From Lepidodermella squamata (taxonomy: Eukaryota; Animalia; Gastrotricha), in assembly GCA_047495785.1 (NCBI GenBank), contig JBLDXI010000029.1:2356001-2420000 (forward strand): a stretch of 64,000 nucleotides of DNA, in the 5' to 3' direction. The notes under the pieces were generated by a model. That model saw only the letters and a list, made by a program, of their open reading frames with translations, was not told the DNA's origin and did no database searches. The position numbers were made by a program, and so were the translations under genes. This document shows, in pieces, positions 1-26,017 of this stretch (the first letter of the stretch is position 1; each line of letters begins with the position of its first letter).

Positions 1-663
1 GGCGAATCGTAGTAGGCAGAAAATGGAGGCTCGTTTGCTCCAAAGGTCCATATTATATATTACAAATACCAATCATGATCAATCAATGAACATTTTTCGC
101 AGCTGCCGTCGGAAACGGAACTCAAGTTACGGGCCTTCCAGCTCTCGATTTGTTCGGGCCACCTTCTTGGAATGGTAAAACAATTCCCCGATCTGAGGCT
201 GTTATTGTGACGATGCCGAAGCCGAGTTACATTTCTTCGATTTCGTTTTCGATTCACAGCGGAGGCTTTAATAATTGTATGTACTCGATTGAGTTTTCTC
301 CCAGTCTGGAAGGTACTTGGTTGCGATTAAATAATGAGAAAATCGCAGGAGAAAATCTCAGTAACGATTTATCTCGTTTCCAAGTTATATTTTTCCGGAA
401 AAAGAGAATATGTCGCGGTAAGTTATGCTTGATTTGGATTTGATTTTCCTGCATTTATTAAACCATCTTGTATCTCTTGTATTACAGTGCGAATTACAGA
501 GGTTTCAGGGTTGTCGTCGAATTACACGGTACAACAGTTCTCATGCCCGTCTCCGGACTACGAAGCCGAGTTTTACGCCGATTATCTTTCCCTTTATCCC
601 AATGGCGAGACAGTGCTATACGAAATCAATAAAAACGGAGTTATGCGTCGGCTTGTAGTTTGA
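1..663 (+). CDS. BTBD9-like protein, array copy 0 (5'-truncated by window edge; exons ..45, 103-417, 488-663)
   Basis: Exons translate to AAVGNGTQVTG...AVIVTMPKPSYISSISFSIH...QVIFFRKKRICR / VRITEVSG...CPSPDYEAEFY...GETVLYEI, closely matching copy 1; GT-AG introns at the same positions. Confidence 0.85.
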
Positions 664-1997
664 ACGTTCACAGTTCAAAATGGTTATGCTCGTTTCAGGC
701 TGCATAACCTTTAAATTAAGCCTTTAACGCCGCTCAAAGCAATGAAATTCTCTATCATAATTCACTACAGTTCACTACACTATACATATAATATATCATA
801 TACCCGTTATACTCTGATTTTTGTCATGTCATCATGGTGATCAGTGGCCAACACTCTTTGATGATTTTACCGAATTTATGTTCTAAGCTGTATCGCTCGC
901 CGTCACTGGATTGGTGAGTTTAGAACCAGTTTACAGGAATTTTCAGACATCGATGAATTCCATAATAAAGTGTAATAAATTTATCAATTTATCAATGAAT
1001 ATTCCCGATTCATTTAAGGTCATATCCCACCCGATCCGATGCTGCGGCGCTGTTTGACAGCGGAGACAACAACGATGTGTTTTTTTGAATGAGAAGGGAC
1101 TGGACCCGGCATGTGAACTCCAAGAAGCGCGATCACCGATGGCCGTAAAATGTTTCATTCTAAAGAACTTCAACGCAACACTTTTCCTCCAAAGTTTCCA
1201 CTCGGCTAATGGCTAATGTAAAGAGAGGCTTTGAAAATTGAGGTCATTGAGGTCGCCCTGAACTGCATTTCTATCTGAAACACAGTAGAGAATTTTATTC
1301 GTTGTAGCGTTACTGTTCAAACTGTTCATTACCTCACAGTACGGCATAGAATGGGACAATTTGGCTCGGGAAGAAATCATTCGTATAAACTGTACGTATA
1401 AACTGTAGTTACGGAAATACTAACCCGGGCATATTAAAAATGATACCTCGAAAAATGGGGAAAAGTAGGCTAAACTAATCAAGGCTGGGCTTCTATTTGA
1501 GAAAGGCCAATGCCACGAAGACCTGACTTTTATTTCCGTCTATCAATCTCAAAACTCATCAAATTGTTTACAATTAAAACTCAGATATCTCGTCCGCGTC
1601 GTCTTCGTGGTAGACGCTCTCCTCGTCGTCGTGGATTTTAGGCACTTCCTCGGTTTGAGATTGAGGTTTAGGTTGAGTAGAAGTAGGTTGCGTCTAGGCG
1701 CAGCAGAGCACGCGTTTCGCACGTGCCGTAGTAGCCTAGGCTATTATTCGAGATAAGACTATCGACGAATTTCAATTTACCTAGGCTTCTAAACGAGGGG
1801 GCTTATATTTCGGTAACTATGATATTATCGATTAATTTTCGGTTTTTGAGATTTTTTGCCGGTACATTCAATTTCGGTGGATTTGAATTCAGCTTGGCCG
1901 CTTCGGAACTTTTTTTCATTGTTTTCAACCTTAATTTTGCTCTATTAGCCAATTTCACAATTTATTTGACGCTGAATCAGCAGCTCGATATCATTCG

Positions 1998-3755
1998 ATG
2001 GCGACGAAAGCGAAGTATTTCGAAAAATATCCTGTTTTGAACCTGTCAGATGTCATCATCAAAACTTATCTGGACCTTTTTGAAAGTTCGCTGAATAGCG
2101 ATGTTGTTTTTACGCTCGATGACGGCTCCGAAATCAAAGCCCACAGTTTTATTCTGAAAAGCCAAGTGCCGTATTTCGATAAGATGTTTGATTCTGGCCA
2201 TTTCAAGGAGGGAAAAACGGGCCAAGTGAAATTGCCGGGGAAAACGTCATTTGCGGTGAAAACTGTGCTACAATATCTGTATACCGGGCGAATCGACATA
2301 CACGAATTGAGCCTGGATGCCATTCTTGAAATCTATCGAGTAGCTCACGAATTCGATATTTCGGCAATGCTTGCGGAGTTGGAGCTAGTTTTTGAGGTGG
2401 GATTGATTTTTGAAATGCTTGATTTGAACTAGGTGAAAAAGACTTGGGCCAATCGAAATCCGGGCTAATTTCGAATGTCTCCCATGTTTTTAGGTCCAGG
2501 TTGATTTTGAGTTGATATCATCTGATTTCCAGGAGGTGATTGATAAGGACAATGTCTGGACGATATTTGAAACCGCTCGCTTTCTTGGACGGAATGATTT
2601 TCTCGGAGTTTGTCGAGACTTTCTCAATTCGAATGCGAGCGACTTGATCGATTCGCCTGCTATTGTTGACATGTCGAAAGATGGGTTGATCGATGTCATT
2701 TCAAACGACGATTTCAGCGCACCGGAAGTCGAAATATTGCTGGCAATTCGCACGTGGCAAGCCGCAAATAATCACTCGGACATTGCTGAGATACTGAACC
2801 AGGTCCGCTTCGGATTGGCCGAAGTTAATGGCTACACGCTCGGCCAAGTTGCTCCTCTCTACAAGTTTCTAGCCGAAAACAACATAAGCCAGGAAATTCT
2901 TGAGAAAAATGATGATGCTCGCAAACGGCGAGTCGTAATTGGCAGAAAATCTAAGATTTGCTCTAAAGGTCTGTGGCTGAAATGTCCTCTCCTTAACTGC
3001 TCTCAATGGTAATTTTTTCAGCTGCCATCGGAAACGGAACGCAAGTTACGGGCCTTCCAGCTAGCGTAGTATTCGGACCGACTGATTTATATGGTAAAAA
3101 AATTCCCCGATCTGAGGCTGTTATTGTGACGATGCCGAAGCCAAGTTACATTTCTTCGATTTCATTTGTGATCCACGACGGCGAAGGCAGAAATAATTGC
3201 GTGTACTCGATCGAGTTTTCCTCCAGTCTAGGAGGTACTTGGTCACGATTACATAACGTGAAAATCGCTGGGCACGCCTACGGTTCACCTTCTTCCCAAG
3301 TTTTGTTTTTCAAGAAAAAACGAATATGTCGCGGTAAGTTATATTTTACATCGACAGGGTGGCCACAAAACACCGCAGTGGGCGAAGTTCTTTGATTGGG
3401 GTGCGCATAAATTCAAAGAGGAGTTTTAAGAAATTGAAGAATTTCATGCATTCTTTTGCCGATGAAACTCCTGAATGTCCTGAAATTCGCATGAAATTGA
3501 TGCGCACTCCAATTAAATACTTATTCGCCCACTGCGGCGTTTTGTGGCCACCCTGGATGAAACCAACTTTTTGTTTCAGTTCGAGTACGAGAGGTTTCAG
3601 GGAAGCCGTCGAATTACACGGTACAGCAGTTCTTATGCCCGTCTCCGGATTACGAAGCCGAGTTTTACTCCGATTACGTCTCGCGTCATCCCAAGGGCGA
3701 GACAGTGCTATACGAAATCAACCAAAACGGAGTAATTCGTCGGCTGGTAGTTTGA
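1998..3755 (+). CDS. BTBD9-like BTB-BACK-discoidin protein, copy 1 (exons 1998-2396, 2533-2968, 3022-3333, 3580-3755)
   Basis: BTB motif SDVVFTLDDGSEIKAHSFILKSQVPYFDKMF...VLQYLYTG; BACK-like exon (LIDVISNDDFSAPEVEILLAIRTW); C-terminal exons resemble the BTBD9 F5/8C domain; canonical splice sites keep frame. Confidence 0.9.
3355..3555. mobile_element. MITE with hAT-like CAGGGTGGCCA termini in intron 3 of BTB copy 1
   Basis: TIRs cagggtggccacaaaac(a/g)ccgcagtgggcgaa match 31/32; the homologous intron of copy 0 (418-487) lacks it; no intact 8-bp TSD seen. Confidence 0.8.
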
Positions 3756-3989
3756 ATTTTTCGGAAGTTTCAAATTGCTTCTGCTCAGAGTGCTAATTTG
3801 CTCAAATTCTTTTCTTGAAAAAACATACCGCCGCTCAAAACAATTGAATTCTTGATTAGAAGATGTTCCCTGTGTTTCATACCTACTCTTCTATGTTTCG
3901 TGTTCGATACATTCACATGTCGTGGCGACAACCTATTCTTGATGATTTTTGCCGAATTTCATTCACTAATAAAATGTATTATGTATTTT

Positions 3990-4266
3990 CCACGAGCCGA
4001 CAACCGTTCTTTGGAAAGAGGACCTGAAGAGGATCATATTCTGGGGGTTTGGAAACTCCGGTAGCAGCAGTTATCCCGGTTTTTATCTCGAAGCGAAGGT
4101 TATCCCCACTAATAATGCAGGACTACATGTTTAACATTTAATTACGTTTTCCAATTATTAGTAATGTACTAATTTTTTTGAAAATGTAGAATTTTTTTTA
4201 CGTTTTTCCAAGTGGCTTAACCCCCAGCGGAGAGTCCTCTCATTTCCAACAGTTGTCGGCTCGTGG
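3990..4266. mobile_element. MITE-like element
   Basis: Perfect 15-bp inverted termini ccacgagccgacaac (3990-4004) / gttgtcggctcgtgg (4252-4266) with further imperfect internal symmetry; no clear TSD. Confidence 0.6.
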
Positions 4267-5174
4267 CAAAAAGAGGGGTAAAACAATAAAGCAGGTGTGT
4301 TGAGGAATAAAAATCACTCCGGTGCAAAAACCAGACGGGTAAGTTACGATGGGTGATATCTGGCAAGCAGAGCGCGGGTTGGAGGACTAATCTAGGAGAC
4401 CTAGACCTAGTCCAACCGGAATCGCCCCCATCATCAATGACTCAGGACTCAGCTAGTTCTATCGAACTTGTAATTTCTTTTCACGAATCAGAATAATCGG
4501 AAACACAAAAGCAACATGAAAAATGAATATTCAGGGTTCAGGGGTATCTGAAAAACAAGCGACACAAGTGACATAGGAGGTGAGCTTCACTTTCAGACTT
4601 GAAATACTTGAAATTTCGACGTTTTTTCGTATTAGGCCGTCGAACACCCTGCGTTTCACGAGTCGATCAGAAATAAAAACAATGCAAGAATAGTGATCTG
4701 CCCATTTTTTCTGTTCGAATGATCGCCGATGTTTCTTTCTTCTTCCCCTCGTTCCGCGATCTGTCGATTGGCGATCGATTATTGTTGCTACACTGTGAGT
4801 CGGTTTGTCCCCAACCCAAACCAGCAAACGCTATATAACAGCGATTTTTCCAACTTGCGACATAACAGCAGAAACACAATGCATCTTTTAAATAGTAAGT
4901 TTTTGCTGTTTTGTCGCGTTCGCTGTATTGCGCAGTTGCTGTTTTGTCGCCGTACCCGTTATCAAAGACTTGATCGAATAGCTTGATCAAAGCGATATAT
5001 CATGATTCAAGTAGAATAAAACTCAAAATTTAAACATTCTGGTAACCATCAAGTACATTAACCACTTGGATGTTGGCTGCGAAATCGCGAACATGCAGCA
5101 ATTTCATGTTCTCAATTTGTTCTCAATTATGAGCTGCATTTTAGAAGAATTTGACCTTCTTTTGCATCTACACA

Positions 5175-5368
5175 AGGGGCGAAGTTCTTTTATTGGAGTG
5201 CGCATTAATTTAATGAGGAATTTCAAGAATTATTTCGCCCGATAAAACATCAATTACATGAACTCATTCCTCGTTAAATCAATGATCTTCGACTTCTCTA
5301 CAGTTCGAATACGAGATGTGGTTTCAGGAAAATCTTCGACGATTTTTGCCGAATTTCATTCACTAATG
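5175..5368 (+). pseudogene. Remnant of a deleted BTB paralogue (intron-3 MITE fragment, exon-4 start, 3'UTR piece)
   Basis: gggcgaagttctttt..gtgcgcat matches the 3355 MITE interior; tacag|ttcgaatacgag matches the exon-4 acceptor; gatttttgccgaatttcattcactaat matches 3943-3970. Confidence 0.6.
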
Positions 5369-5879
5369 CGTGTGCCAAGTGCGTACCTTAAATTTAGGGT
5401 TCCATCACTAATTTTGAAACTCCAGCACTAGATTTCCATTAAATATGGTTTTTCGAGTTTCATGTCTTCGCTAGAATCTCAACTTTTTCGCTATCATGCC
5501 CAACCGATAGATCTTAATATTACGCTTATTTTGCGCTATAAGACGTTAGTATCCGAGATAGAATTCAGCCTGCAGAGCCGATATCGATTCCAAGTATCGA
5601 TTTTACAAATCAGTGATTATTCCGATATCAGCTGTTGCGGAACAAAACATCCATAATTTTTCTACATATCTTAGGGCGCCAGGTAGCTATAATATACAAA
5701 TCGTGGGTTCAGGGAGGGCATCAAAGGGTTTCGGGCGAGTTTCGATCAAAAGACGAAAACGCCGAAATTGCGAAGAATCTGAAAAATTTAGGCCCAAGTG
5801 GTGGAACCTCAGTTTTGTGGTGCAAATATTCGGACCCTAATAAAATGTCTTATCACGATGTCTATTTTAGTTGGTTACA

Positions 5880-7991
5880 ATGAATATGTTCGATTCTTTC
5901 GGGGTAATATCCCAACCGGATTCGATTCTGCAAAATCTCGCGACTCTGTTTGACGGCGGAGAAAACTATGATGTGTTGTTTATTCTCGACGACGGCTCAA
6001 AAATAAAAGCTCATCGCGCTATTCTTGCCGCTCAGCTGCCGATTTTCGCAGCCATGCTTGCCCCTTCCAAATTCAAGGAGGGAACTGTAGGCGAAGTAAA
6101 GCTTCCAGTAAAAGGTCCGACTGTGGTGAGGACGGTTCTGCGGTACCTGTACACGGGTGAGATGAAGCTCAACGATCTCGATCTCGATGATATGCTCGGA
6201 ATCTATCGAATGACTCATGAATATGCAATCCAACAGCTTCTTGATCGCGTTGAGGTTATTCTAGAGGTAAGTCGATTGTGAACCGTTTCCATCTCTAAAT
6301 TGCCATGGAAGAAGTTGAGATCGAAATTAAAAATTCTTGAAAACTCGGCAAAATAATATCCGAAATTTGAAGCATTTTATTATTGAACAATTGTGTTGGT
6401 TTTGCTTTGTGGAAATGGTTTATGCGTTCTCAAATTTAACATTCAAGTTTGGGGAGTCTTATAGGGGAAAATCATTTATAAAGAGAAAGCAGGTCACGAA
6501 AACCAACGACCTGAACATTTAAATTGAATATAACACTCAATTAAATATTTAAATATTTAAATTTACTAACTTCTTAATGTTCTTCCAGCAGCGTTTTTGA
6601 ATTACAAAACTATTTCAGAAATTGTCGATTTTTTCCCCTATTTTTCACGCTCCCATATATCCTTCCTAAAAATGAAGGTAAGCAAGGCTGCCTCGAAAAT
6701 TTATGGTTTCTAAATAAATTCGAAATTCAAAAAAATAAAAATTTTTTTTTTTATTTTTGTCCTATTTCGGACAAGATACGTTTTTGCGCTCAGTTTTGCT
6801 CCATCAGGCAAACGAATTTTTTGCTGGTTTCAGCAACAACAAAATGGATGAATAATTTATATATTTATCACAAATTATTTCATGTATTTTCATCAGGACG
6901 TTATTGACAAAAACACCGTTTGGGCGATTTTCGACAACGCGTACTTGTTGGGCCGAAACACTTTGATCGATTCGTGCCAGGAGTTCATTTCATCCGATCC
7001 TAAGGATATCATCGAATCGCCACCAATTGTCGATATTTCCTTTGAAGCGCTGACCTACTTGGTGACCAGCGACAAATTTGGCATAACTGTTATTGAAGCT
7101 CTATTCACGGTTCGAATCTGGCAAATTACTAACAAGCACCCGAAAATTCGGGAACTGCTCGAGAAAATTCGTTACGACAAATCACACATCGAAGGTTACA
7201 CACTGATAGATATCGAACCAATCTTCAAGTTTTTGGTTGATTACTCAATCGATATGTCTAGTCTAGTCCAGTCGGAGAATGCGAACCAGGAGCCACCTAA
7301 GAAACGGCTGAGACTTGCTGTGCCGAAAAGTTGTCTCAATAATGATTATATCTTCATCTAAGCAACTAAATTCTTCATTTTTCTAGCTTCGCTTGAAACT
7401 GTTTCTGAAGTTACTGGAATCGATAAGCAGATTCTGTTTGGCAATTTGGCAGATGACTGGATACCTGAAGGGAGCTTTTTGAAAAGTGGCGGAAGTGTAG
7501 AAATTTTGTTAGCCAAGCCGCTTACCACCAAGTCGATCGCTTTTCGCCTGATTACGTATGAATTCCGTTACGGTAGCTATTCCAGCCACAACTGTTCATG
7601 CCGCTGTTTCAAGGTTGAAGTTATCACGCGAAGTGGTGGTAGCTGGCAGAAATTGGCGCTTTTGCCGCCGAAAGTCGCCGACGGGGCCAATAACAATGTG
7701 GCAGGTTTTACTGATATGCAGGTTCTTTTATTCAAGCGGATGAGACTTCGAGGCAGTGAGTTGAATACCAGTTATAACAATTATTTAAGATGAAGGTTTT
7801 ATTTTTCAGTCAGGATAACAGCGGTTACGGAGCCGATTAATGCAAAGGAATATAGCATCAGAGGTTTCTCCTGTCCGTCGCCAACACACGAAGAATCGCT
7901 GTTCAATGACTATACGACTCTGTGTCAGGAAGGCGAAACGATGTTATTCGAAATTGTAAAAGGAAAATGCAATCGCAAACTCAAATTATAA
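5880..7991 (+). CDS. BTBD9-like protein, copy 2 (exons 5880-6266, 6897-~7330, 7387-7755, 7810-7991)
   Basis: YDVLFILDDGSKIKAHRAILAAQLPIF...LRYLYTG BTB motif; BACK exon; divergent discoidin-like exons; same four-exon layout. Confidence 0.85.
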
Positions 7992-8758: not shown

Positions 8759-10560
8759 ATGGCGAGTAAATCTCAGTATTTCGGAAAATTTCCGGTTTTG
8801 AACCTGTCCGATGTCATCATCAAAACGTACCTGGACCTTTTTGAAAGCTCGCTGAATAGCGATGTCGCTTTTACGCTCGATGACGGCTCCGTAATCAAAG
8901 CCCACAGTTTTATTCTGAAAATCCAGCTACCTTATTTCGAGAAAATGCTGGACAGTGGCCGTTTCAAGGAGGGAAAAACGGGCCAAATCAACATGCCAGG
9001 GAAATCGTCTTTCGCGGTAAAAACTGTGCTTCGGTATCTGTACGCTGGTCAAATCGACATTCGCGAATGGGACATGGATACTACGCTTGAAATATATCGA
9101 ATAGCTCACGAATTCGATGTTTCGGCACTACTTCAGGAGATGGAGACAGTTTTTGAGGTGGCATTGATTTATTATTTTCAAAATGCCGATTTGTATTAAA
9201 ATAGCTAAAAATTCGATTCTGGGTCTCATTTTTATGGGAACAACTTTTTGAATAATTATTCATCAAAAAGGCTATTTCGAAATTCTTCAGATTTTCGTAA
9301 TTAATTATCTGAAATGTTAATATTATGGTCAAATTCTGCATGATTATTTAGTGTCTCAAAATAACTTTTTTTACTATTTTTCGGTCTTGTTAAATCTATA
9401 TCGTTTTCAGGATGTCATTAATAAGGACAATGTCTGGACGATATTCGAAACCGCCCACTTTCTTGGACGTCAAGATTTTCTTGGAGTTTGTCGAGACTTC
9501 GTCAACTCGAACGCTAGCGAAGTGATCGATTCGCCTGACATTGTCGACCTGTCGAAAGATGGGTTGATCGATGTCATTTCAAACGACGATTTCAGCGCCC
9601 CTGAGGTCGAAATACTGTTGGCGATTCGTAGGTGGCAAGAGGAGAAAAAGCACCCTGAAATCGCGCAGATATTGGGCAAGATTCGCTTTGGTTTGGCCGA
9701 AGTTCAAGGCTATACACTCGGCCAGATTTCTCCTCTCTACGATTTTCTGATTGAAAACGGCATTGGGTTGAAGGTGCTCCAGCAGAACGATGACTCTCGC
9801 AAACGGCGAGTCGTGGCTGGCAGAAGATTGCAGATTTACTCCAAAGGTTAATAGATCAAATAACTATACCCGTACTGATCTAAAGTTTTTGAATTTTAAA
9901 ATTTTAGCTGCAATGGGAAACGGAACTGAGGTTACAGGCCTATCAGATTTCGAAGTATTTGGGGAGCCGAGCACGCATACGCGCAAACGTAATTTGTTTA
10001 AATATAAACACATATTTTGACCTCCAAAACAGTTACTGACATCATTGCTTTAAACTTTTGTTAGATCCTGTGTCCACTATCCCGCCTACTGAGGCTGTGA
10101 TAGTGACGTTGCCGAAGCCGAGCTACATCTCGTCCATCTCATTTTCGATTCACGACGGCTTTGGCCACCTGAATTTCTTGTATTCGGTTGACATTTCCTC
10201 AAGTCTAGCAGGCCCCTGGTCGCGATTAAACAAAGAAGGCATCTTCACTGGAAATGGCAACATCCTTGTCCATGGCAAAATTCTTGATCCTTACCCTCGC
10301 CAAGTTTTGTTTTTCAAGAAACGAAGAGTTTGTCGAGGTAAGTAATGCAAACCGTATAAATCTTGCTCTCATTCCCCATTGAGACAGTGAAAATTACCGT
10401 TGAAACAACGGACAATCGCTACACTGTCCAGAAGTTCGCAAGCCCTTGTCCCGATTTCGAAGCCAAGTTTCATGCTGATTACATGGAGCGCTGTCCCGAA
10501 GGCGAGACGATGCTATTCGAAATCGTCAATGACCAAGTAATTAGTCAACTCAAAATTTGA
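8759..10560 (+). CDS. BTBD9-like protein, copy 3 (five exons; extra intron 9989-10064)
   Basis: Exons 1-2 nearly identical to copy 1 (FPVLNLSDVIIKTYLDLFESSLNSDV; DGLIDVISNDDFSAPEVEILLAIR); C-terminal exons end GETMLFEIVNDQVISQLKI*. Confidence 0.88.
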
Positions 10561-10592
10561 CGTTTCGAACATCTCAAACTGAGTTTGCTCGG

Positions 10593-11684: not shown

Positions 11685-12677
11685 ATGGAACTTTCAAATA
11701 CCAGTTTCAACGTCCTGATAACAATAGGAGGAATTCCAAAATCAGCAATTGATTTTTTGCAAGCGAAAGGCTGCAATGTCGACCTATGGCATCTCGAAAC
11801 TCAAATGCCAGTCGACGAGCTGAAAAAACGCATAAAAAACGCCGACGCCGTTTATTGCGATATTTCCGACAAAATCAATCGCGATGTGATCGAAGCTGCA
11901 AGTTCGAGGCTGGAAGTTATAGCTACAATGCCTGGTGAAGTGGATCATATCGATAGAACCGCCTTAAAAGAACGAGGAATCCGACTAGTCCAGACGCCTG
12001 ATTTTCCGACAGACACTGCTGCTGAACTGGTAATTTGCCTGACCCTTATGGCGATGCAGAAAGCTTTTCAAGTTAGGAATGGAACAATTCCCAATGACTG
12101 GATATGTGGTGACGTCATTTGCGAGTCCAAAATCGGACTTGTCGGGTTTGGCAGAATCGGCCAGGCCGTAACCTCGCGTTTAAAACCGTTTAAACCTGCG
12201 AAAATGTTATACAATTGCCTAAATCGGGAGAAAGGCCTAGAAGTTGAGCTCGGCGTTAGTTGGTGCGAAAATTTGGACGATTTGATGAAGCAGTCTGACG
12301 TTGTCATTGTTTGCTGTACATCAGATGATTCTACCCGCCATTTAATTTCGAAACAAAGGCTGAGTCTCATGAGGAAAGGGTCGTTTTTTATCAACGGCAG
12401 CTGCCGAGATGGGGTTGTCGATCAAGACGCGTTGATTGAGCTGTTACGGGAGGGTCACTTCGGCGGGGTCGGGCTAGCCGTGACAACGCCTGATTCTTTA
12501 CCGGCTGATAGCGAGCTGCTTAAATGCCCGGAATGTGTCGTTATTCCTCACATAGCGCCGTCGTGTCGAGAGAAAATCGTTGATTTAACTGTTCGAAACA
12601 TCTGGGCAGCTTTGCAAGGCGAACCAATGCCGGCTGAGAAATGCGATGAAAGAATTGTTCGAGAAACCCTCGTTTGA
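11685..12677 (+). CDS. D-isomer-specific 2-hydroxyacid dehydrogenase, glyoxylate/hydroxypyruvate reductase (GRHPR)-like, single coding exon, divergent active site
   Basis: 330-aa ORF; Rossmann GLVGFGRIG; DHID...TDTAAEL; VVDQDALIELL; VVIPHI; C-terminal LQGEPMP as in the GRHPR family. Confidence 0.88.
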   Translation: MELSNTSFNVLITIGGIPKSAIDFLQAKGCNVDLWHLETQMPVDELKKRIKNADAVYCDISDKINRDVIEAASSRLEVIATMPGEVDHIDRTALKERGIRLVQTPDFPTDTAAELVICLTLMAMQKAFQVRNGTIPNDWICGDVICESKIGLVGFGRIGQAVTSRLKPFKPAKMLYNCLNREKGLEVELGVSWCENLDDLMKQSDVVIVCCTSDDSTRHLISKQRLSLMRKGSFFINGSCRDGVVDQDALIELLREGHFGGVGLAVTTPDSLPADSELLKCPECVVIPHIAPSCREKIVDLTVRNIWAALQGEPMPAEKCDERIVRETLV

Positions 12678-13332: not shown

Positions 13333-15092
13333 ATGGCAACTAAAACGCTTCCTTTCAACAAATTTCCGGCTATCAATCAAGCCGATGTCGTCATACGCGC
13401 TCTGACTAATCTTTTCGATAGCTCAGCCAACAGCGATGTCATTTTTCTGCTCGACGATGGCACCCGCATCCGAGCTCATAGAACGATATTAGCTGCGAGG
13501 CTGCCGGTATTCGATCGGATGCTGGCTCCACAGAATTTTCGCGAGGGAACTCTTGGTCAGGTTAAGCTGCCGGGTAAACGGTCGGTTGTCGTGAAAAACG
13601 TCTTGCGATACCTGTACACTGGTGAAATGGCGGTTAACGACTTTGACCTCGATGTGATGCTGGAAATCTATCAAATGGCTCATGAGTATGATATTCAGTC
13701 GCTCTTGAGTAAAGTTGAGGAGTTTCTGGAGGTTAGATTTGAATCCTATCAAATTCGTGATGAAAATACAAAATTAGCTAATTAAATCGAAAAATTGAAT
13801 GCATTTTTTTAATTCACTCCCTGAGCCACAGTAATTTTAGTTTTTCTTTGAAGGTCATTTTTCGATAAAGCTATGTTTTTTGAAGATGTAAAAATTCAGA
13901 AATGAACGATATTTCATACAAATACTTGTGTAAGGTTGGGCCTGATTTTTCTGCAGCAGATGTTTGCAATTTGACAAATTTTACCATATTTTTGAAGATC
14001 TACACAATTTTAGCGGCTTATTTTTCAGGAAGTTATCGATCAAGCTACAGTTTGGTCGATTTTTGACGTTGCCCATTTGCTCAACCGTAGCGATTTGCTT
14101 GGGGCGTGTCGAGATTTCATGGCAGCAAGCGCTAGCGATATCATCGAATCGCCCGATATTGTTCACGTGTCGAAAGAAGCTCTCATCGACATGATCAGCA
14201 ACGACGAATTCAGCGTGCCTGAAATCGACATTTTGTTCGCCGTACAAAAGTGGCAAGAAGCGAACAATCACCCTGATATTCAAAGCGTTTTACAGAAAGT
14301 TCGCTACGGGTTGGCTGAAATGGACGGGCTGAATATAATTCAAGTGGCGCCTCTCTACGCATTCTTGACCGCCAATGGTGTTGACCTTAGATCTCTCGGA
14401 CAAAAGAAAGATTCCGAAAGGGTAGTCAGCGGCAGAAGATGCAAGGCCTTGTCATCTAAAGGTGAATTTTCCGACATTTTTCAATTTTCATGGTTAAAAT
14501 TTCAATTATATATTCGTAAAAAGCTGCGCTCGGCAATGGCACCCAAGTTATTGGCATTGATGGAAAAATTGTATTCGAAAAAATTGATCTCTTGCGAATT
14601 ACGTATCCAGCTTCTGTGAATGATGGACAAGCAATAGTCGTTACCCTGCCCAAAGCTTATGCAGTCTCGTCGATATCATTTTGGTTGTACGGCGCGAATG
14701 GTTACGCTTGCAATAGCGTGAATGTAGAAGTTTCAACCAATCGCGAAGCTGAATGGCAGCAGTTGACCAAAATTAATCCTACTCGGGGCTCCTCTCACGG
14801 CCAAAGTTATTCCGGCCATTATGTTTTTCTCTTCAAAAGGCGCCGTGTCCGCAGTAGTAAGTTTCACTTGAAGTTCTCATTTCCAGTGGAATCTGCTTTC
14901 CAAATTTCAGTCAGGATTACTGCATCTCAGAATACGTATCGCGCCTTCTGTGTCAGAGATTTCCAGTGTCCATCGGTGGATTACGAAGCGAAATGCTTAC
15001 CGGAATATTGCGCTCGATTTCGGAACGGTGAAACCGTACTCTATCAGGTCTACAGCGACGGCAGCATCCTTGAGAAAACCTACTACGATTGA
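13333..15092 (+). CDS. BTBD9-like protein, copy 4
   Basis: SDVIFLLDDGTRIRAHRTILAARLPVF BTB; exon 1 ends 13731, exon 2 14029-14461; discoidin-like exons end GETVLYQVYSDGSILEKTYYD*. Confidence 0.88.
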
Positions 15093-15339: not shown

Positions 15340-15405
15340 AAGGTTTTTGCTGGCTCCACAAAGACTTCGCGAGGCAACTCTTGGCAAAGTTGAACTGTCG
15401 TGAAA
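15340..15405 (+). pseudogene. Small decayed fragment of BTB exon 1
   Basis: ttgctggctccacaaagacttcgcgaggcaactcttggcaaagttgaactg (LAPQRLREATLGKVEL) vs LAPQNFREGTLGQVKL in copies 4 and 5. Confidence 0.55.
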
Positions 15406-15969
15406 AGTCACGTTGTTGCGAGTCGTGATGTTGACTGAAATTTGATTTGAAAACCCAGCCAAAGCCGCATCAGAGCTAAAAATTCTCAAGACAAAATTGT
15501 CAATATCTTGTCAAATTAAATTAAATTTGTCAAAGTAAAATTGTCAAATACCAAAAGAGGTTTTTCCCTCTGGATCAAAGGGATGCTATGTTTATTTTTA
15601 AAATTTACGACGCGAAGTTTGAGAAATAAGGCCAAAACTAAGGCCGGAGCAATCAACCCATAAAACCTTCAGGTGACCTCAGCACTCGATGATATTTATG
15701 AAATCCTATATTGTAGTCAATTTTATTACACTGTAAAAAATCCAGGTTTTTAGCGGTTTTGAGAGCCCTAATCAATTTAATACGAGGGATTTATACGGGC
15801 TTTTCACAGCGTTTTCTGCGGTTCGGTTTCAGCCCACCGGTTCTGAATTGGTTTCAATCGCAGTTTTTTCGGGCTCATCAAAATGAGCCAAATTTGGCTT
15901 TTGGCTGTCGGACGGCTGCTGCACAAAGGCCGGCTTAGATGTCGAAATGTAGAGAAGGCCGGGTTTTAG

Positions 15970-17944
15970 ATGTCGACTGATAAAGGGTTTTTCAAAAATT
16001 GCCCAGCCATCCAGCATGCCGACGTCGTAATTTGTGCTCTCGCCAACCTCTTCGAGAGCGGTTCGAACAGCGATGTCGTTTTTCTACTCGACGATGGCAC
16101 CCACATCGGGGCTCATAGAACGATATTGGCAGCGAGGCTGCCGGTATTCGATCGGATGCTGGCTCCACAGAACTTTCGTGAGGGAACTCTTGGTCAGGTT
16201 AAGTTGCCGGGTAAACGATCGATTGTCGTGAAAAGCGCCTTGCGATACTTGTATACTGGTGAAATGACAGTCAACGACCTCGATGTGATGCTGGAAGTCT
16301 ATCAAATGGCTCATGAGTACGGCATTCAATCGCTGATGGAGCAAGTGGATGAATTTTTAGAAGTAAGTTCTCGAACTGTACATTTTCAGTTTGATTATGA
16401 TTAAAAAATCCTTCACTATAGAAAATAATTTTTTATCATGTCTAAGCGATACCTGTATCGCCATATTATCAAGCGAATTTTAGGGAGGGTATCTGTATCG
16501 ATCAGCAAATGAAAAAGTCGAATTCATAAAAAATCTGAAACATTTTAGCGCCCAAAAATCGGATGGGCAAATAGATTTTTATATTGCTTCTCTAGAATCA
16601 ACCGCTTGTTGATTTGTTTTTGTAGACGCATGGAATTTCCCTGGACCAAGCTATGACAACAAACTCAGATTTGATGAAATTAATAAAACTTATTATTTTT
16701 ATTATTTTTATTGGAAGTTGTCAATCAAGCTACAGTTTGGTCGATTTTCGATGTTGCCTTTTTACTGAACCGCAGCGATTTGCTTGAGTCCTGCCGAGAT
16801 TTTATGGCGTTGAACGCCAGGGATATCATCAAATCACCCGATATTGTTCGCGTGTCGAAAGAAGCTCTTGTAGACATGATCACTAATGAAGAATTCAGCG
16901 TGCCTGAAATCGACATTTTGTTCGCCGTGCATAAGTGGCAAGAAGCGAATAATCATCCTGATATTAAAAGTGTTTTACAAAAGATCCGCTACGGCTTGGC
17001 TAAAATCAACGGTCTGACGATAGTTCAAGTGGCGCCACTCTACTCATTCTTAGCTTCGAATGGCATCGATCTGAAATTGCTCGGGCAAGTTGTTCGAAAC
17101 GGCGAAGCAACTAAAAGAAAATCATCCAAAGGTAACTTTTACACAACTTGTCACGGACTAAGCGGGTTTATAAGTTAAAACTTTAATTCAGCTTCAATCC
17201 AGGATAATTTTAGATTATTGGTTCGGTTATTTCTGTTTTGTCAGCAAATTTTGACGATTTTAAGTATTAGCCTATATACCAAATTTTTGGTAATTTATAA
17301 CACGACTTGGTTTTTAATTGCTCCTATTTTATACACCACTACGAAGCGGCACTTAGTAATGGCACCAAGGTTACCGGTATTGATGCTAAAACATTATTCG
17401 AGAAAGTTGACAATTTCTCGGAATCGATTCCGAACGCCGTTAAAGATGGGGAATCAATAGTCGTCACATTGCCTAGAGCGTGCATGGTTTCGTCTATTTC
17501 ATTTTCGCTGTACGGAAGCCGTGGCCGAATTTGCTCAAGCCTCCAGGTGGATGTTTCCAAGGCAGCAAGCTCCGAATGGCAGCAATTGGTAGCACAAGGC
17601 TATGGTAGCTCTGGGGTATTTTATTCTACTAATCCTGGGTTGTACGGCCACCAGGTGATTTGTTTCAAACGCCGGCGTGTTCAAAAAAGTGAGTTGGCGT
17701 TTTTCCAATGCTTCAACATGAGATTGTTGCCCGAATTTTTTTAGTAAGAATAACATCAAATTCGAACGGCAGCGATTATTATTGCGTCAACGATTTTCAA
17801 TGCCCTTCGTCCGAATTCGAATCGAAATACCTGCCCCGATTTTCTGCTCGACGTCCGAAAGCTGAAGCCGTGCTCTACCACATTTATAACGGTAGCCTTC
17901 GAATGGAATTCGTCAGCGCTCCAAGTCCCACAATGAATGACTGA
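15970..17944 (+). CDS. BTBD9-like protein, copy 5 (reading frames intact but intron-1 acceptor reads TG; possible incipient pseudogene)
   Basis: Very close to copy 4 in exons 1-2; four exon blocks present; expected acceptor at 16712-16713 is TG, not AG. Confidence 0.75.
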
Positions 17945-18528
17945 TTTTATCATATGACGCTGAGTCCCTATGACTCTTCACTCCCATATTCAATCTGATG
18001 ACTGATAAGATCTATGGCCGCAATCGAAAGAAAAATATTTTGAAATTAATAAATCTGTACACTTATGAGTAAAATTGGCGACAATTTCCGGGCTATCGAG
18101 AATTATTTCGAGGCAATCATGTAGCCATTCGCGCCTTATTGGCTAATCTCTTGGACCTTCGATATTAGCTCAATTGAGGTGAAATCGGCAATCATGTTAA
18201 ACAGAACCACTCCTTGATTAACTGATAAACGGATAACTCGAAAGCAACTTCTACTATAACACCAATTGGCGGATCGGATTAAAGCGCGCGAAAAACTATG
18301 CGCGCAAACCAAACAAATTATGCGTTATTACCCCGTTGATAATAAATCAGCAAAAACAATCTGGTAATTATCGAGCGATCGCCGGTAATTTATCGCGCTG
18401 GCTTAACAATTAGTTACTCCACAAGTCCTTCGATAGCGAGAAATTGAAATACATTTTTGCAGTCACTTCATTCACGTTTCATTTTCGCTAATATTGCATC
18501 TTTCTTGCCGATATCGTCCGGTTATAGC

Positions 18529-20620
18529 ATGAAAAACGAGTCTCGGCTCTTCTACCACTTGCCGAACATAAGACACCATGACGTGGTGATAAATGGTCTA
18601 GCCAAGCTTTACGACAACGCGACATTCAGCAATGTCGTGTTCGTACTCGACGACGGCACGCGCGCCTACCAGCCCATCGGCTTATTCTCGCGTCGCAATT
18701 GCCGATATTCGAAAAAATGCTGTTTTCCCGGCATTTCAATAAAGAAGGGTACATGAGGGAAGTTAACTTGCCCGGCAAGCGATCTATTGTTGTCGAAAAA
18801 GTTCTGGCATATCTATACACTGGCGTTTTGAACGTGAGAGAGTTGGAGCTCGATGTGATGCTAGAAATCTACCGAATGGCACGCGACTACGACATAATCG
18901 CGTTGCTCGATCAAATCGAAGAATTCCTAGAGGTGAACTAAAAATTATTGAATTTAAATGCATTTTTAATTGCTATGAATATTTATATTTGAATTTAATT
19001 TTTTCGTTTCTTTAAAAGTTTAATTTTTTTTTAATTTCAATAAAAATTTCTATTTAATTTTTTAATTTTTAATTGATTTTTTTTAATTTTTAATTTTAAG
19101 AAAATTGTTTTTCAGTGTTTCCCATTTTTATATTCAAAGATTATTTTAATTAAAATTCGACGCATAAAATTTTTCCTGTTAGGATGTGATCAACTTCGAT
19201 ACAGTCTGGCCAATATTCGATACCGCTTACTTGCTAGGCCGTAGTAAATTGCTGGAGGCGTGCCGTGATTATATGACGTACAACGCTGAAAGCATAATTT
19301 CTTCACCCGATATCATCAACGTGTCAAAGGAAGCTCTCATCGACATGATCGGCAGCGATGAATTCTGCGTCCGTGAAACCGACATCCTATTCGCTGTTCG
19401 CAAGTGGCAAGAGGTCAATTGCCACCCTGATATTCTTCAAGTGTTTGAAAAAGTCCGTTTCGGTTTGGTCAAACTCGACGGGTTGACACTTTTGCAAGTA
19501 GCACCACTCTTTTTGTTCTTATGGTGTCGACTTGAAACTGCTGGTTGAAAACAGAAATTCTCAACGAGTTGAGGCTGCTAGGAAGAAGAAGCACATAACA
19601 GAATCGTTTGGTAGGTTTTCGATTTTCTTTTTATTACCGCAACTTTGAACTTGTTTTTCGGGGGTTAAAAATAAAAAAGGGTCCTCCTTATACCGGAACA
19701 AAATTTGCTGTAGCGGAACCAAACATGCCATTAAACGGAACCAAATTTTAAAATTTTTGGTGGGCCTAAAACCACTTTTCGGAACTTCAAGAATAAAAAA
19801 TTCTAAAAAGAAATTCTGAATAAAAAATCTCTAAAATTTGAACCAGAATTGTGATGAATTTTAAGAATTTTTATTTTTTCCACGGGTATTAGCGGAAAAA
19901 TCGCGCAAATAAAATCAAATCGTAGCGCGAAACAAAAAGGTCGCGCGAAAATATCTAAAATAACATTATGTCCAAAATCATCCTATTTTTGTATTCTTGA
20001 ATATTTTTTTCATGTTTAGCGGCGCTGGGAAATGGAACAAAGGTGACCGGCATGGACGAGAAATCGTTGTTTGAAAAGTATGTCAACCTTCAAGGCTACT
20101 CTCACAATAACGTCGCACCAAGTCTCCCCAAGTCCGTGAGTGACAGCAAATCGGTAATTATCACCCTGCCGAAGCGAAGTTTCGTCTCCTCAATTGCATT
20201 TTCGCTGCATGGCGCTCATGGTTACGGCTGTCCCAAGTATTCAGTTTGCGTTAGTTCGAGGGTTAACGGCAGTTGGTTACTGCTGGCTGAATTGCCGAAC
20301 GGCTCGAATACTTACAAGGAAAATTATCGCGATCAACAAGTTCTTTTCTTTCAGCGCCGCCGCATTCAAAGCAGTAAGTCTGTCTTTATTGCTGGAATTT
20401 TACTGCAAATTGAAATTATTAATCAATTTATTTTATTTTAGTACGGATAACGTCTTATTCAAGTACAAACGGTGACTACTGTGTCAAAGAATTCGCTTGT
20501 CCGGCGCCGAATATCGAGGCTGAGTATTTCAGCGAATATCAAACCAATTACCCACAAGGCGAGACAGTGGTCTATCAAATCGAAGGCGAACGTGTTCTTG
20601 ACAAACTGCAAGGATTATGA
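18529..20620 (+). pseudogene. BTBD9-like copy 6, frameshifted
   Basis: +2 frameshift in a cgcgcg run near 18663 (GTR/LPAHR split across ORFs 18457 and 18699); second frameshift near 19521 (FL/GVDLKLL out of frame); exons 3-4 remain open. Confidence 0.8.
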
Positions 20621-21231
20621 TTGGCTGATTGATTTTCAACGTTTGGACAATGTTTTTGTGTTCACAATCTTTTATCAGTTCTGAATAAAATTTCATAATA
20701 AAATTTTCAGCATCAATTTTTCAAGTTTTCTTCGAATTTTCCTCGTTGAATTCTATATCGAAAAAGTAAAGTTCGGGATTGTCGGCAGATTTGAAAATTA
20801 AATAAACCGCCAAGGTGCGTTAGAGTTTAATTTATTTTATGAATTGCACTTGAATTGCACTTTATTTTTTTCTGAAACATGTCTCTACTTCAAATGGTCA
20901 GAAGCTTTGATTCTGGCGACGTTAGATTCCGACGCAACCTTAGGAAATCATATAAATAGGTTCCGCTTTCTGAGGTTATTGTGTTTGGCAGTGACAATTG
21001 TTTTGAGGGGAAATTGGGGCTTAGGGACCGGGCTTAGGGATTTTCGGGCTTCTCATGAAATGGGAAACAAATTTTTGTCATGCTGATGAGGGGGCATTTT
21101 CTAATGAGCAAATGGAGCGAAATAACCCTCCACCCGTGCAAGTAATACAAGAGTATTTCTACAACGACAATGGTCTATTATTAATTATCGCCTGATGGAC
21201 AACGCCCATTGCGCGTTTCATAGACAACTCT

Positions 21232-21266
21232 CATAGATAAATAAATACTGTATTTATTTATCTATG
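21232..21266. mobile_element. 35-bp P-type excision footprint / mini-element inside the left TIR
   Basis: CATAGATAAATAAATAC-T-GTATTTATTTATCTATG (17+1+17 palindrome) flanked by direct repeat acaactct (21224-21231, 21267-21274); absent from the right TIR. Confidence 0.85.
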
Positions 21267-22114
21267 ACAACTCTATACAGATCGGAAACTAGCGATCTTC
21301 CTATAGTAAATAAATTCACACCAAAACGTGAAAAAGAACAAATTCTGATTCGCTCAAGGTTTATATCGTTGGATAGAGCAAAAATCGAATAAGATCATAG
21401 TATTTTTCTCGGAATTTTTCGGCTTAAAATGAAAAAGGGTGAGGTAAAATCTGCCGCCCGAAAGGGTAAAAGTTCGCCCCATTTGTGTCGCCCAAAAGTA
21501 AATAAAGTCGCCCTCATTGCGTGATCGCCGCACTAATCCACCTTAATCCGCCTCTTACGGCGAAAGGCCGCACCTGACTGATAAAATGTCGCCCCGTTAG
21601 AATAAGAAAAACGCAAATGTGATGATGATGCCTATTAGCCGCATCTCTATTCCTTTATTTGGTATCAATATTACATCGGCTGAACCGGTATATGAACCAA
21701 AATAACTACCATACATTAGGATATATGATTACCGCGGACGATAGCGATAGGAATATCGCGCGGACGATTTTTTGGGACAATTTGGCAATCTGAGCAGTAA
21801 AGCAATAGCCACTAATGCTTGAGCAGGGACATATTAGGACATTAGACACTTACCACTGGCCAGGTTTTGCTTGGACGTTTTGGGACGGATTTATGTTCAA
21901 GGCATGCTTATTACAGGCCGAACAAATTACGACGTGGAAGCGTTGGTTGCGTCTCTCTTCAAGCATTTTATTACCACTGAAAGTTCACACACCCGCTGCG
22001 CCCCTCGCATGCCTGTCGAAGGTGTTGCAAGCTCGCGGCGTTAAAGCGGCTTGCCGGGGATCAAGGGATTATCTGCTGCGTTCGAGTGTTTACACGCCGG
22101 ATAAGCTACGTGTG

Positions 22115-22172
22115 AAGGACTCGATGTCCGGTCACTAAAATAGGCAGCTTTGACCACTACGCGCACCATGCA
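22115..22172 (-). repeat. Possible tRNA-derived SINE head
   Basis: Minus strand gcatggtgcgcgtagtggtcaaagc (A-box-like) ... acatcgagtcc (degenerate B-box); no full cloverleaf. Confidence 0.25.
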
Positions 22173-22409
22173 GTTACTACCTGTAATAAATAGGAACTAA
22201 CTGTGCTGTTCAGTTTTGCTGTCAACAAGTTTGCGATATGGCTATTCAAGAGCTATTGCGAACACCTATTGCGAACAGCGATCGCTATTAGATCGCTCAA
22301 AGGTAGCGCTAACCTATAACGTGTAGTTTTATTAGGTAGACCGTGCGATGTATCGCCCATCGGGCTGCTATCCTCATCCGCAGGTCTTATTCGAACAGCT
22401 TAGGTATAT

Positions 22410-22654
22410 CAGTGCTCCGCAAACTTTTTTCACCATCAGCATTTTTGGCGGCCGGAAAGCCTATGCTCCAGCCACAATTTTGGCTGAAAATAGTGCAAAA
22501 CAGGCTGATTTTCGGGTTATGATCGTGCGAAACAAGGCATCCGGCCGCATTCCAGCAATCCTTTGAGAAAATTCTACCGGCCGCCAATAGGCCGCCATGA
22601 TCTGCCCAGCCGGCCGCACGTGGCCGGAAAAAAATCCGAGTTTGCGGAGCACTG
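22410..22654. mobile_element. hAT-like MITE nested in the Mutator-like element
   Basis: Perfect 16-bp TIR cagtgctccgcaaact / agtttgcggagcactg; internal GGCCG subterminal motifs; 8-bp flanks match only 5/8. Confidence 0.65.
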
Positions 22655-23431
22655 ATTTAAATAAAAAATTAGCTGCCCAAGTTGGATAAATGAAATTGGG
22701 CGGCGGTTTAACCTCATGGCGACTTTGTTTACTTTAGGGCGCACCTCTTCAAAACGAGGGCGCGCTATTATTAAATGAGGGCTGAGATTAAACGAGGGCG
22801 GACTTTTACCTTTTGGGGCGGCAGATTTTATTTTACCGAATGAAAAATTTTACCGTCCTGAAAGACTCTTGAAATGGCGATTTTTCGTAAAAGTGACCAA
22901 CTTTAAGAATATTTTAATAAAGTTAGAAGAAAACCGTCTCATGAGACGGGACTCATTCGATAGAGGAGCGCTTCTAGTATTCTGGTAAATTTGTTTGAAA
23001 TTTTTGGGAAATGAAAGATTTTCTCTGGGAATTTTAGAAAATAATTAAAAATCGGAAAAATTACTATGGGCGGATAGGGCGATGAGTGAATAAAAATGAA
23101 GATCGCGTGCCCACTTTTTCACGTTTTGGTGTGAATTTATTTACTATAGGAAGATCGCTAGTTTCCGATCTGTATAGAGTTGTCTATGGCGCGTTTATTC
23201 ATATCTAGCTAGTGTTATCGGCACTTTTTCTTGTGTTTGAGATAGAAACTAACTCAATTACACTTTCTTCGCAATTAACCATAAGTATTCATTTTGTGCG
23301 ACAGTTTTTCGAAAATGGTCGGAAGCATCAAGTTTGATGCCTGGAGGCCGCAATGGCCTGTGACAGCGCAAAAAATACCCAGCCGTTATTGCCGTTATAG
23401 CCAACGGCTAATACTAATACCTATTAGTAAT

Positions 23432-23575
23432 CCGATTCCGATGAACGAAGGCGATTTTTCGGTGGTTCTCGTACCTCGCACTAAGCAGCAGTCGTGATTT
23501 TAGCTTGCTGAAAATTTTCTATTGTTAACTCTATTGTAATGGCTATTTATCACTGGAATTCTGCTCTCTTGTAAC
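23432..23575 (+). repeat. Inverted duplicate of the last exon and 3'UTR of GH31 copy A (~26420-26555)
   Basis: Encodes IPMNEGDFSVVLVPRTKQQS* vs IPLSEGDFSVVLVPRTKQQS* on the minus strand at 26555-26491; UTR similarity continues downstream. Confidence 0.88.
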
Positions 23576-23725
23576 CACACATTTTTTAACGGATTATCGG
23601 GTAGATTCTTTGGCATTGTTCTTTTATTTCGGTGAACAGCTTATCCACATAGAACATGAACACGGACACCCGGAGTCAGTATTAGAAATCAGTTGCTTAT
23701 GGCATGAGATATGATCGTATAGGTG

Positions 23726-26017
23726 TTACTTGCAAACTAGTTCTTCCTGAATGATACCGTTGTGCACTTGGAACAGCACTGTTTCACCTTTCTTGTATCG
23801 AGTTGAGTACTGCGTCAGATATTTCGGTTCGTAATCAGCCGATGGACATTGGAAATCTTGGACACCATAGTGGTTAGAAAGATAGCTAGACGATGTAATT
23901 CTGACTGAAAGAGTACAAAATGCAACTGTGAATAAAAATCCCTGTATATCAGAAACTGAAACTAACCTGATCGAACGAGGCGTCTTGTAAAGAACAAAAC
24001 TTGGTGATTGGAAAAATGCTGGCCATACAGTCTCGCCAATTGCTGCCATTCGGACCCTTCTTCCTTTGATACATCCAACAGTAGACTTGAGCAAAACTGC
24101 CCCTGACCATCGAACAGCCAAAACGAAAGCGACGATATTGCTTGTAATTTAGGCAGAATGATAACTATCGATTGACCACTTTTAACTGCAGCTGGAAATG
24201 TTCGCTTGAATTTCTCGAATAATATTTTTTCGTCGATACCGATAACTTTGGTACCATTTCCGATGGCCGCTATAATCAATGAATATACATAGTTATATTA
24301 TGTATTCCATCGCTTTTGATTAGTAAACGAAATATCGTCGTGCGCCCAGAAAAAAATGGGATGTCCACAAAACTTGTCGAGATTAATCGAAATCCAACTT
24401 TGATAATTTCTACAATCGGAATTACCAGTAAAATTCGTCACTGGGTAATCGACCCCGCTCTTTCGAATGGCGGAGTCTGTTTCCTTATTCGTACGTGTTG
24501 CGCTATAGGTAAAAACGGACGTTGCTTTTTGGTTTTCGCGTAAAATCATGGTTTGCGGGCGCTTCGGGTTCGATTCCTTGCGGCCCCCACAATGCTCGAT
24601 TTTTCAATGTTTATTTTTTATTACATCTTTAGGTAGCCTGATAAACCCATTTGCAATTTTTTTGCTTTTTCGTGAAGTGCCCAGGGCGTTTACGAATGCT
24701 TATCGGCGAGTATCAACTAGGAATCATGGACTTGTGAATTGATATGAGCTATTGCATTTGCTATTATTCCAAAAATAGTCGCCAATAATTTTTACGATGC
24801 ATTCATGTCAGTGAGTGAGCATTATTTTTTCCGTGGACTTGCCTCCACGCTTTGGACTTTGCCCGTCGAAATACTGACCTTGTAAAGCTACGAATCCGTC
24901 AAAAGTCATTTTCGACCGGGTATGAACGTAGCACTTTTTCCGCGCGCAGGACGATATATCTCAACGTGTTTCTGTCGTAATAATTTATCTAGAGACACGC
25001 CTCTTAGAACCGCACTTACCGTAAGAAGATGTCGAGGATGTCCGCTTTGTTTCAGAGTTAGGACTTTGACCAAGCAATTTAAGGTCAACGTCATTGGCGG
25101 TCAAGAACTGGCAGAGCGGTGCCACTTGAACTAATGTCAAGCCATCAATCGTAGCCAAGCCATAGCGAATATATTTCAGAATCTCTTTGATGTCCGGATG
25201 TTTATTCTCCTCCTGCCACTTTTGAACGGCGAACAGTATGTCGATTTCAGCAGCGCTGAATTCATCCTTGCTTATCATGTCGACGAGAGCTGCTTTTGAC
25301 ACGTGAACAATGTCGGGTGATTTGATGATTTCATCGGCATTAGATGTCATGAAATCTCGACAGGCGTCGAGCAGATCGCACCGGTTTAGTAATAGAGCAA
25401 CGTTGAAAATCGGCAACACTGTGTCTTTATCAATCACTTTCTGCAAAGAATACCAGTTGCCTTCAACATTTTTTTATATAATTTGCATCAAAATATAAAA
25501 TCTTTTTCATTTCCCAAATCCTAATAGTTTTCTATGTGTGAACTATCGGCAAGTAAAATGTGATGAAGTTAGATCTTCTCCTGAAAGCTGGCTTAGTTCG
25601 TTTCAATTGAAATCTTACTTCGAGATATCCTTCAATTTCCGCAAGCAAGGCTTCAATGTCGTACTCATGAGCCATTTGATAGATTTCCAGCATCACATCC
25701 AGGTCAAAGTCGTTAACCGCCATTTCACCGGTGTAGAGGTATCGCAAGACGCTTTTCACGACAATTGACTGCTTACCCGGCAGCTTAATTTCGCCGAGTG
25801 TTCCTTCGCGAAATTTCTGCGGAGCCAGCATGGTATCGAAAATTGGCAATTGCGCTGCCAGAATTGCTCTATGGGCTGGGATGCGGGTACCGTCGTCGAG
25901 CAGAAAAACGACATCGCTGTTGGCGGAGCTATCGAAAAGTTTAGCAAAGGCACGAATAATAACATCAACCTGCTTGATAGCTGGGAATTTGCGAAACCAA
26001 GTTTCAGCGGAAGCCAT
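23726..26017 (-). CDS. BTBD9-like protein, copy 7 (the only minus-strand copy)
   Basis: MASAETWFRKFPAI...SDVVFLLDDGTRIPAHRAIL BTB; BACK exon ~25441-25020; discoidin-like exons ~24270-23968 and ~23904-23726; canonical splice sites. Confidence 0.88.

Follow-up and report, generated by a model that had tools for sequence, protein, structure and literature searches.

Positions 1-26017 of the window (the whole 64,000-nt stretch of Lepidodermella squamata DNA analyzed here) hold eight BTB-BACK-discoidin paralogues, which belong to an adaptor family derived from BTBD9 whose architecture is new and whose binding face appears re-specified. This family is real and apparently undescribed. Judging from sequence, its members are probably CUL3 adaptors derived from BTBD9, in which the target-binding face would have been re-specified and different proteins would be presented via variable loops.

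An array of eight BTB-BACK-discoidin paralogues

The first-pass annotation had listed at least eight paralogues plus remnants, and our count agrees with it, with eight copies and two remnants identified (Table 1). Six of the copies are intact, with open frames of 433-456 aa and normal splice sites, one is frameshifted, and one has a damaged splice acceptor. Seven lie on the forward strand and one on the reverse strand, with the last one ending exactly at position 26017. Each copy has one exon for BTB, one for BACK and two for the C-terminal part, and the introns, in phases 0, 1, and 1, are at positions common to all copies. Copy 1 starts 934 nt upstream of the window, and the 30 kb upstream contain no additional copy beyond it. 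Copy 6 is possibly splice-defective, the nearest in-frame open alternative to its exon-2 acceptor being 25 codons downstream. The earlier description of the BTB and BACK exons as near-identical within subgroups was overstated since identity there is 65-81% at the amino acid level. An unrelated intronless 2-hydroxyacid dehydrogenase gene also lies inside the array. The window has, in addition, short introns and metazoan housekeeping genes, including a DHX8 whose N-terminus, compared over most of its length, reaches no more than 63% identity with named animal proteins.

Table 1. Features of the array (window positions unless stated otherwise)
Feature	Position	Strand	Remarks
Copy 1, exons 1-2	5' of window, L001:8566-8964, 9110-9545	+	
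Copy 1, exons 3-4	103-417, 488-663	+	441 aa, intact
Remnant	995-1085		Resembles start of BTB exon, 72% nt identity to copy 3
Copy 2	1998-2396 (BTB), 2533-2968 (BACK and linker), 3022-3333, 3580-3755	+	440 aa, intact; ancestry mosaic
Copy 3	5880-6266, 6897-7329, 7387-7755, 7810-7991	+	456 aa, intact; most divergent member of the array
Copy 4	8759-9157, 9411-9846, 9908-9988, 10065-10337, 10388-10560	+	453 aa, intact; exon 3 split by an extra 76-nt intron
Copy 5	13333-13731, 14029-14461, 14524-14856, 14911-15092	+	448 aa, intact; weak exon-3 acceptor
Copy 5, discoidin (F5/8C-like) domain and helix/beta-hairpin tail	14524..15092	+	Four variable loops
BTB exon remnant	15348-15418	+	
Copy 6	15970-16362, 16714-17131, 17347-17688, 17745-17944	+	450 aa open frame; exon-2 acceptor TG instead of AG in the assembly
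Copy 7, pseudogene	18529..20620	+	Assembly frameshifts near 18662 (exon 1) and 19520 (exon 2)
Local inverted duplicates of the copy 8 upstream flank	21001-21218 / 26141-26359; 23186-23294 / 26043-26151; 23433-23588 / 26400-26555		93-99% alike, split by nested MITEs
Copy 8, inverted	26017-25619, 25440-25020, 24269-23967, 23904-23726	-	433 aa, intact

The copies are derived from BTBD9

Normally, BTBD9 is conserved and present as one gene, with links to sleep and muscle signaling. Database searches with the array copies were made exon by exon, while spliced models were built locally only. The BTB (Pfam PF00651, 60-69 bits) and BACK (PF07707, 39-46 bits) domains both score above cut-off; exon 3 gave sub-threshold F5/8C matches only, with PF22633 reaching 23.4 bits, below its cut-off. 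No close relative with a name emerged from word-based protein searches, and a sequence search of the PDB was blank. Since word searches left the C-terminal domain open, we built a profile from 19 exon-3 sequences and searched 1.84 billion representative proteins with it. Most of the matched proteins carry two matches, 40 of 150 display a BTB-BACK-domain-domain architecture, and those that are named are BTBD9 of mite, beetle, and nematodes. These matches to BTB-BACK-2xF5/8C proteins bear out the BTBD9 ancestry that had been proposed at first pass, and BTBD9 is the closest named relative of the copies.

The genome retains a canonical two-domain BTBD9 on contig 17, with its NEV motif intact. A mite BTBD9 query found its best match there (395-397 kb, E 1e-48) and matched the window copies at E 1e-4 to 1e-6 per exon only. 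The array copies are derived paralogues, not BTBD9 orthologues. As in BTBD9, BTB, BACK, and discoidin follow each other in the same order, a phi-x-E motif is present, and the last intron (phase 1, before the last two strands) coincides in position with one of the BTBD9 encoded by this genome, where a corresponding intron occurs in both discoidin domains. In contrast to BTBD9, the copies have one discoidin domain instead of two, with a stop codon 35-45 residues beyond the FxCP motif; the NEV motif is replaced in every copy, as are the other conserved loops; a helix/hairpin tail and two introns have been gained; and there are about 34 genes, with the canonical gene persisting separately. The single discoidin domain is most like the second one of BTBD9, which outscores the first in 24 of 29 copies when D1 and D2 HMM scores are compared, and complete copies end with an F-x-C/S-P-type motif, as in BTBD9 domain 2.

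A predicted discoidin fold with an added tail

Structure prediction yielded the discoidin/galactose-binding-like fold that the first-pass annotation had suggested. AlphaFold models with pLDDT of 84.8 and 85.7 (the latter with a pTM of 0.83) display a galactose-binding-like sandwich; for the model of the domain plus tail, we made use of the natural in-frame read-through of the last intron of copy 5. Structural matches include CBM32, IFT25, BIRC6, and DOC domains, with Z of 7-9.6 (about 9 to CBM32/DOC-like domains) and rmsd of about 3 Å. Foldseek gave no match at E<0.001, and an Atlas structure search was uninformative. While the fold is common to the discoidin domain of the copies and the galactose-binding-like domains of DOC/APC10 and CBM32, identity is 8-18%, which allows no ligand inference, and the tail of the copies lies outside most matches. 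This tail of about 40 residues, which follows the sandwich and is absent from canonical BTBD9, is predicted to be a confidently folded helix and beta-hairpin.

Variable loops on a steady scaffold

Four inter-strand loops vary both in sequence and in length, and the alternation of strands in the sandwich would place all four on one face. The five loop peptides quoted in the first-pass annotation all immediately precede the QV(L/I)(F/C)F strand in exon 3, and the loop flagged there (before QVLFF) spans 11-24 residues among the copies. Within the subgroups defined at first pass, identity is 62-86% in the discoidin strands and 29-58% in the loops. The strong exon-3 variation reported earlier therefore holds for the loops but not for the strands, which are as conserved as BTB/BACK. 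Similarly, its placement in exon 3 is right for three of the loops, but the fourth, which is the mapped substrate loop, is in exon 4. This last loop, equivalent to the NEV loop of BTBD9, lies early in exon 4 and is different in every copy. Human BTBD9 uses the NEV motif in its second discoidin domain to bind the proteins KCTD10 and CAV1 (10.1101/2025.05.15.654347). In true BTBD9, these loops are where conservation is highest, with 69% identity across animals versus 54% for the frame (in well-conserved orthologues), and the pattern is thus reversed in the paralogues.

Selection on the loops

We estimated dN/dS using our own GY94 code on the locally spliced models, with loop limits set after seeing the alignment. 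In the two window subgroups, omega was 0.20 for BTB, 0.20 for BACK, and 0.26 for the discoidin frame, 0.58 for the linker and 0.48 for the tail, and 1.01 for the loops, with a likelihood ratio (LRT) of 210 at 5 df for region-wise differences in the window clades. Seven subgroups genome-wide gave the same picture. When synonymous rates were left free per region, loop omega fell to 0.60 and frame omega to 0.19. The loop dN/dS excess over BTB/BACK (0.6-1.0 versus about 0.2), which had been anticipated, is therefore robust. The first-pass annotation had named a non-discoidin fold and the lack of such an excess as findings that would speak against its proposal; what we found is a discoidin fold and an excess in the loops.

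In contrast, positive selection on the loops is suggestive only. In the M7 versus M8 comparison proposed at first pass, M8 was favored (p 1.6e-5 in the window, 1.7e-4 in 15 genes), and it was weakly favored over M8a (p 0.034 and 0.008, respectively). Every site with a posterior >0.9 in the site models falls in a loop, and a class restricted to the loops gave an omega of about 1.8 (p 0.002). However, the signal of omega >1 was gone when columns within two of a gap were dropped, which left 14 loop columns, and again when multi-nucleotide substitutions were allowed (LRT 0.04). Loop sites are also in part constrained, with an omega of about 0.15.

Family size, age, and array history

Scans of the 121.2-Mb assembly (151 contigs) revealed about 34 such genes, which is a lower bound, with eight on contig 29 (the window), seven plus one on contig 1, six on contig 3, four on contig 17, three each on contigs 10 and 19, and one each on contigs 16 and 59. 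There are tandem clusters on contigs 29, 1, 3, 10, 17, and 19, and pseudogenes and remnants are present. In a quick BTB+BACK tree comprising 32 family members, BTBD9s, and kelch-type outgroups, all 32 members group together (SH-aLRT 99) to the exclusion of the BTBD9s and the outgroups, which together with the genome-wide count agrees with the lineage-specific expansion that had been postulated; the placement of the family relative to BTBD9 has a support of only 48 in this tree. The window copies are monophyletic (96) and nested in a 16-gene clade with genes from contigs 1 and 16 (99).

Two ENA metagenome proteins are one-to-one sisters of dispersed family members, and one of these sister genes shares an upstream ankyrin gene with its counterpart. 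The metagenome contigs with these two syntenic or orthologous copies derive from a related animal. Since such sisters exist, the one-domain-plus-tail design is older than this species, and the window array is a later local expansion. No relatives of the window clade were found elsewhere, either in the profile search of 1.84 billion proteins or in a JGI metagenome scan with the BTB exon. Nematodes have divergent BTBD9-like proteins, including two one-domain proteins outside this clade, which suggest parallel cases.

The 3' half of the genes exceeds BTB about 1.8-fold in synonymous divergence (p 6e-6), and in both trios of window copies the informative sites change their pattern along the gene (permutation p 0.007 and 0.003), which indicates that part of the conserved-adaptor pattern is due to gene conversion or unequal crossing-over. 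A pair of genes on contig 1 has 6-12 nt differences per 150 in BTB and 29-47 thereafter. Such exchange also couples old adaptor halves with new receptor halves. Overall, the copies differ from each other at 23-67% of four-fold sites. The inverted duplicates of the flank of copy 8 (Table 1) are the scar of its inversion. Capture of copy 8 by a Pack-MULE was considered and rejected, its flanks being unique to this locus.

Proposed mechanism and alternative explanations

In other BTB adaptors, a phi-x-(D/E) motif in the BTB alpha3-beta4 loop contacts CUL3, with phi-x-E alone being insufficient proof of CUL3 binding (PMC6484134). This motif is found as F-[K/R/I]-E in all eight window copies, and cullin genes are present in the genome. 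No signal-like or membrane-like hydrophobic segments were detected in the seven copies translated in full. A shared nuclear localization signal was rejected, the canonical motif occurring in only 2 of 29 linkers.

We propose that a duplicate of an ancestral BTBD9 lost one discoidin domain, the survivor being most like domain 2, and that this one-discoidin derivative gained a short folded tail. It would then have multiplied by tandem duplication, accompanied by conversion between neighbors, inversion, and loss. Since BTB and BACK are kept under purifying selection and phi-x-E is retained, each protein most likely docks on CUL3. The loops on the face equivalent to the one with which BTBD9 binds KCTD10 and CAV1 would have been rewritten in each copy, so each copy most likely delivers its own, different target from the cytosol or nucleus to the ligase.

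As for what drove this re-specification, one tentative answer, a sub-case that names the driver, is an intracellular surveillance repertoire, as had been suggested at first pass, here pitted in an arms race against proteins of pathogens or transposons, which is possible but on balance doubtful. It would account for the clustering in tandem, the birth and death of genes, the indels in the loops, and the 5'/3' mosaicism, as well as for the preference for M8 over both M7 and M8a, the restriction of high-posterior sites to loops, and the elevated loop-only omega, but this selection signal is the one lost with near-gap trimming or multi-nucleotide changes, and for some family members another species has one-to-one orthologues, unlike fast arms-race genes. 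The fuller proposal of a gastrotrich-lineage innate surveillance system, in which dozens of one-discoidin BTBD9 derivatives would act as antibody-like CUL3 receptors tagging pathogen or transposon proteins, positive selection and 5'/3' recombination having diversified their four loops, seems rather unlikely to us. We are just as skeptical of genomic drift, whereby the loops of redundant duplicates would have been freed from constraint and evolved neutrally while weak purifying selection and conversion held the fold and BTB/BACK. A loop dN/dS that is never robustly above 1, the pseudogene and remnants, and the 5' homogenization implied by the higher 3' synonymous divergence are what drift would leave behind, and it has likewise been argued for plant F-box genes (PMC3030570). 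However, six of the eight copies keep open frames and splice sites despite substantial synonymous divergence, dN/dS in the strands is about 0.2, and some of the loop sites are constrained. Besides pathogens and drift, endogenous targets may be a further driver.

Two other readings concern the nature of the copies. As Fbs F-box proteins read glycans, the copies might be cytosolic lectin-type adaptors reading glycans through a CBM32-like domain, and the top structural matches are indeed CBM32 and fucosidase CBMs. We find this highly improbable: IFT25 and BIRC6 are within about 1 Z of the lectins, the DOC domains of CUL7, HERC2, HECTD3, and APC10 match with Z of 7.1-7.5, and no loop residue is common to the whole family among 19 members. 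Glycan recognition is further disfavored since the parent BTBD9 domain binds proteins, as described above, and since several E3 ligases use this fold, in the form of a DOC domain, to bind peptides. An artefact of whole-genome amplification, with chimeras or haplotypes in the assembly, deserves mention because MDA DNA was used for the probable source assembly (PMC11660948) and an inverted segment is present, but we give it almost no credence. The copies are too different at four-fold sites, the inverted flanks are 93-99% alike and MITE-interrupted, unlike a chimera, and relatives occur on seven other contigs and in another species. BTBD9-derived CUL3 adaptors with a re-specified target-binding face are the reading that we prefer.

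Significance

The array follows the expanded-E3-adaptor pattern already known from the F-box and MATH-BTB families. Nematode expansions of both families were reportedly described by Thomas in 2006, and those of monocot MATH-BTB and plant FBX genes are discussed in PMC3030570. The array shares with them the conservation of the end that binds cullin, the variability of the substrate end, and the occurrence of tandem clusters and pseudogenes. In contrast to these families, the substrate domain here is discoidin, the phylum is another one, the genes number tens rather than hundreds, and positive selection is suggestive only. A literature search, of incomplete coverage, found no report of a BTBD9 expansion.

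Our findings amount to a well-supported gene-family observation, not a new mechanism. BTBD9, which is normally a single gene, became a multi-gene family in which the conservation of the binding face is reversed. The recurring expansion of cullin adaptors thereby gains an independent example from a phylum that has received little study, and one that involves a new substrate domain; it bears on whether immunity or drift lies behind such expansions. The copies also represent a natural collection of loop variants of the discoidin domain, all carried by a stable, putatively CUL3-recruiting scaffold.

Neighboring Genes and Repeats

By eye, two diverged multi-exon genes of the window look like membrane-anchored glucosidases combining a trefoil domain with a GH31 domain, as in maltase-glucoamylase. 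The housekeeping run includes a 1536-aa ORF, DHX8, a short-chain dehydrogenase, an SLC17-like transporter, and an HBS1-like GTPase. Within the paralogue array lies a 330-aa D-2-hydroxyacid dehydrogenase gene without introns, glyoxylate reductase-like and with domains PF02826 and PF00389, which is possibly a retrocopy or a transferred gene.

The MITE has ends identical over 71 nt, is present in dozens of genomic copies, one of which sits in an intron of a contig-1 paralogue, and carries a second, 1.4-kb element nested within it. Sequence related to the smaller element in copy 2 was found near 5177-5229.

Features of the window, with positions and strands
Feature	Position	Strand	Remark
Element, ~200 nt	3355-3555		Inverted ends of 32 nt; in last intron of copy 2
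Copy 4 intron	9989-10064		
Dehydrogenase gene	11685-12677	+	Between copies 4 and 5
Short, near-perfect palindrome	21231-21267		Adjoins left end of MITE
Non-coding inverted-repeat element (MITE)	21266-23184		~1 kb type, multi-copy
Diverged multi-exon gene	26480-32620	-	Judged by eye
Sulfotransferase-like gene	29880-30911	+	In intron of 26480-32620 gene
Housekeeping gene run	40578-64000	all -	
Diverged multi-exon gene	51380-55154	-	Judged by eye

Diverged Members, Outside Relatives, and Introns

Three family members at 344-362 kb of contig 10 (loci L013-L014) have very diverged, multi-exon discoidin parts that the profiles barely pick up. Two BTBD9-like proteins of other organisms, P0257 and P0265, also have a single discoidin domain but fall outside the family clade and lack its C-terminal tail; their one-discoidin state reflects either independent domain loss or truncated models.

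In a contig-1 paralogue (L007:2877-3053, ~2,488.9 kb), the conserved third intron requires GC-AG splice sites. Copy 4 alone has an additional intron, positioned inside a variable loop, an apparent case of recent intron gain.
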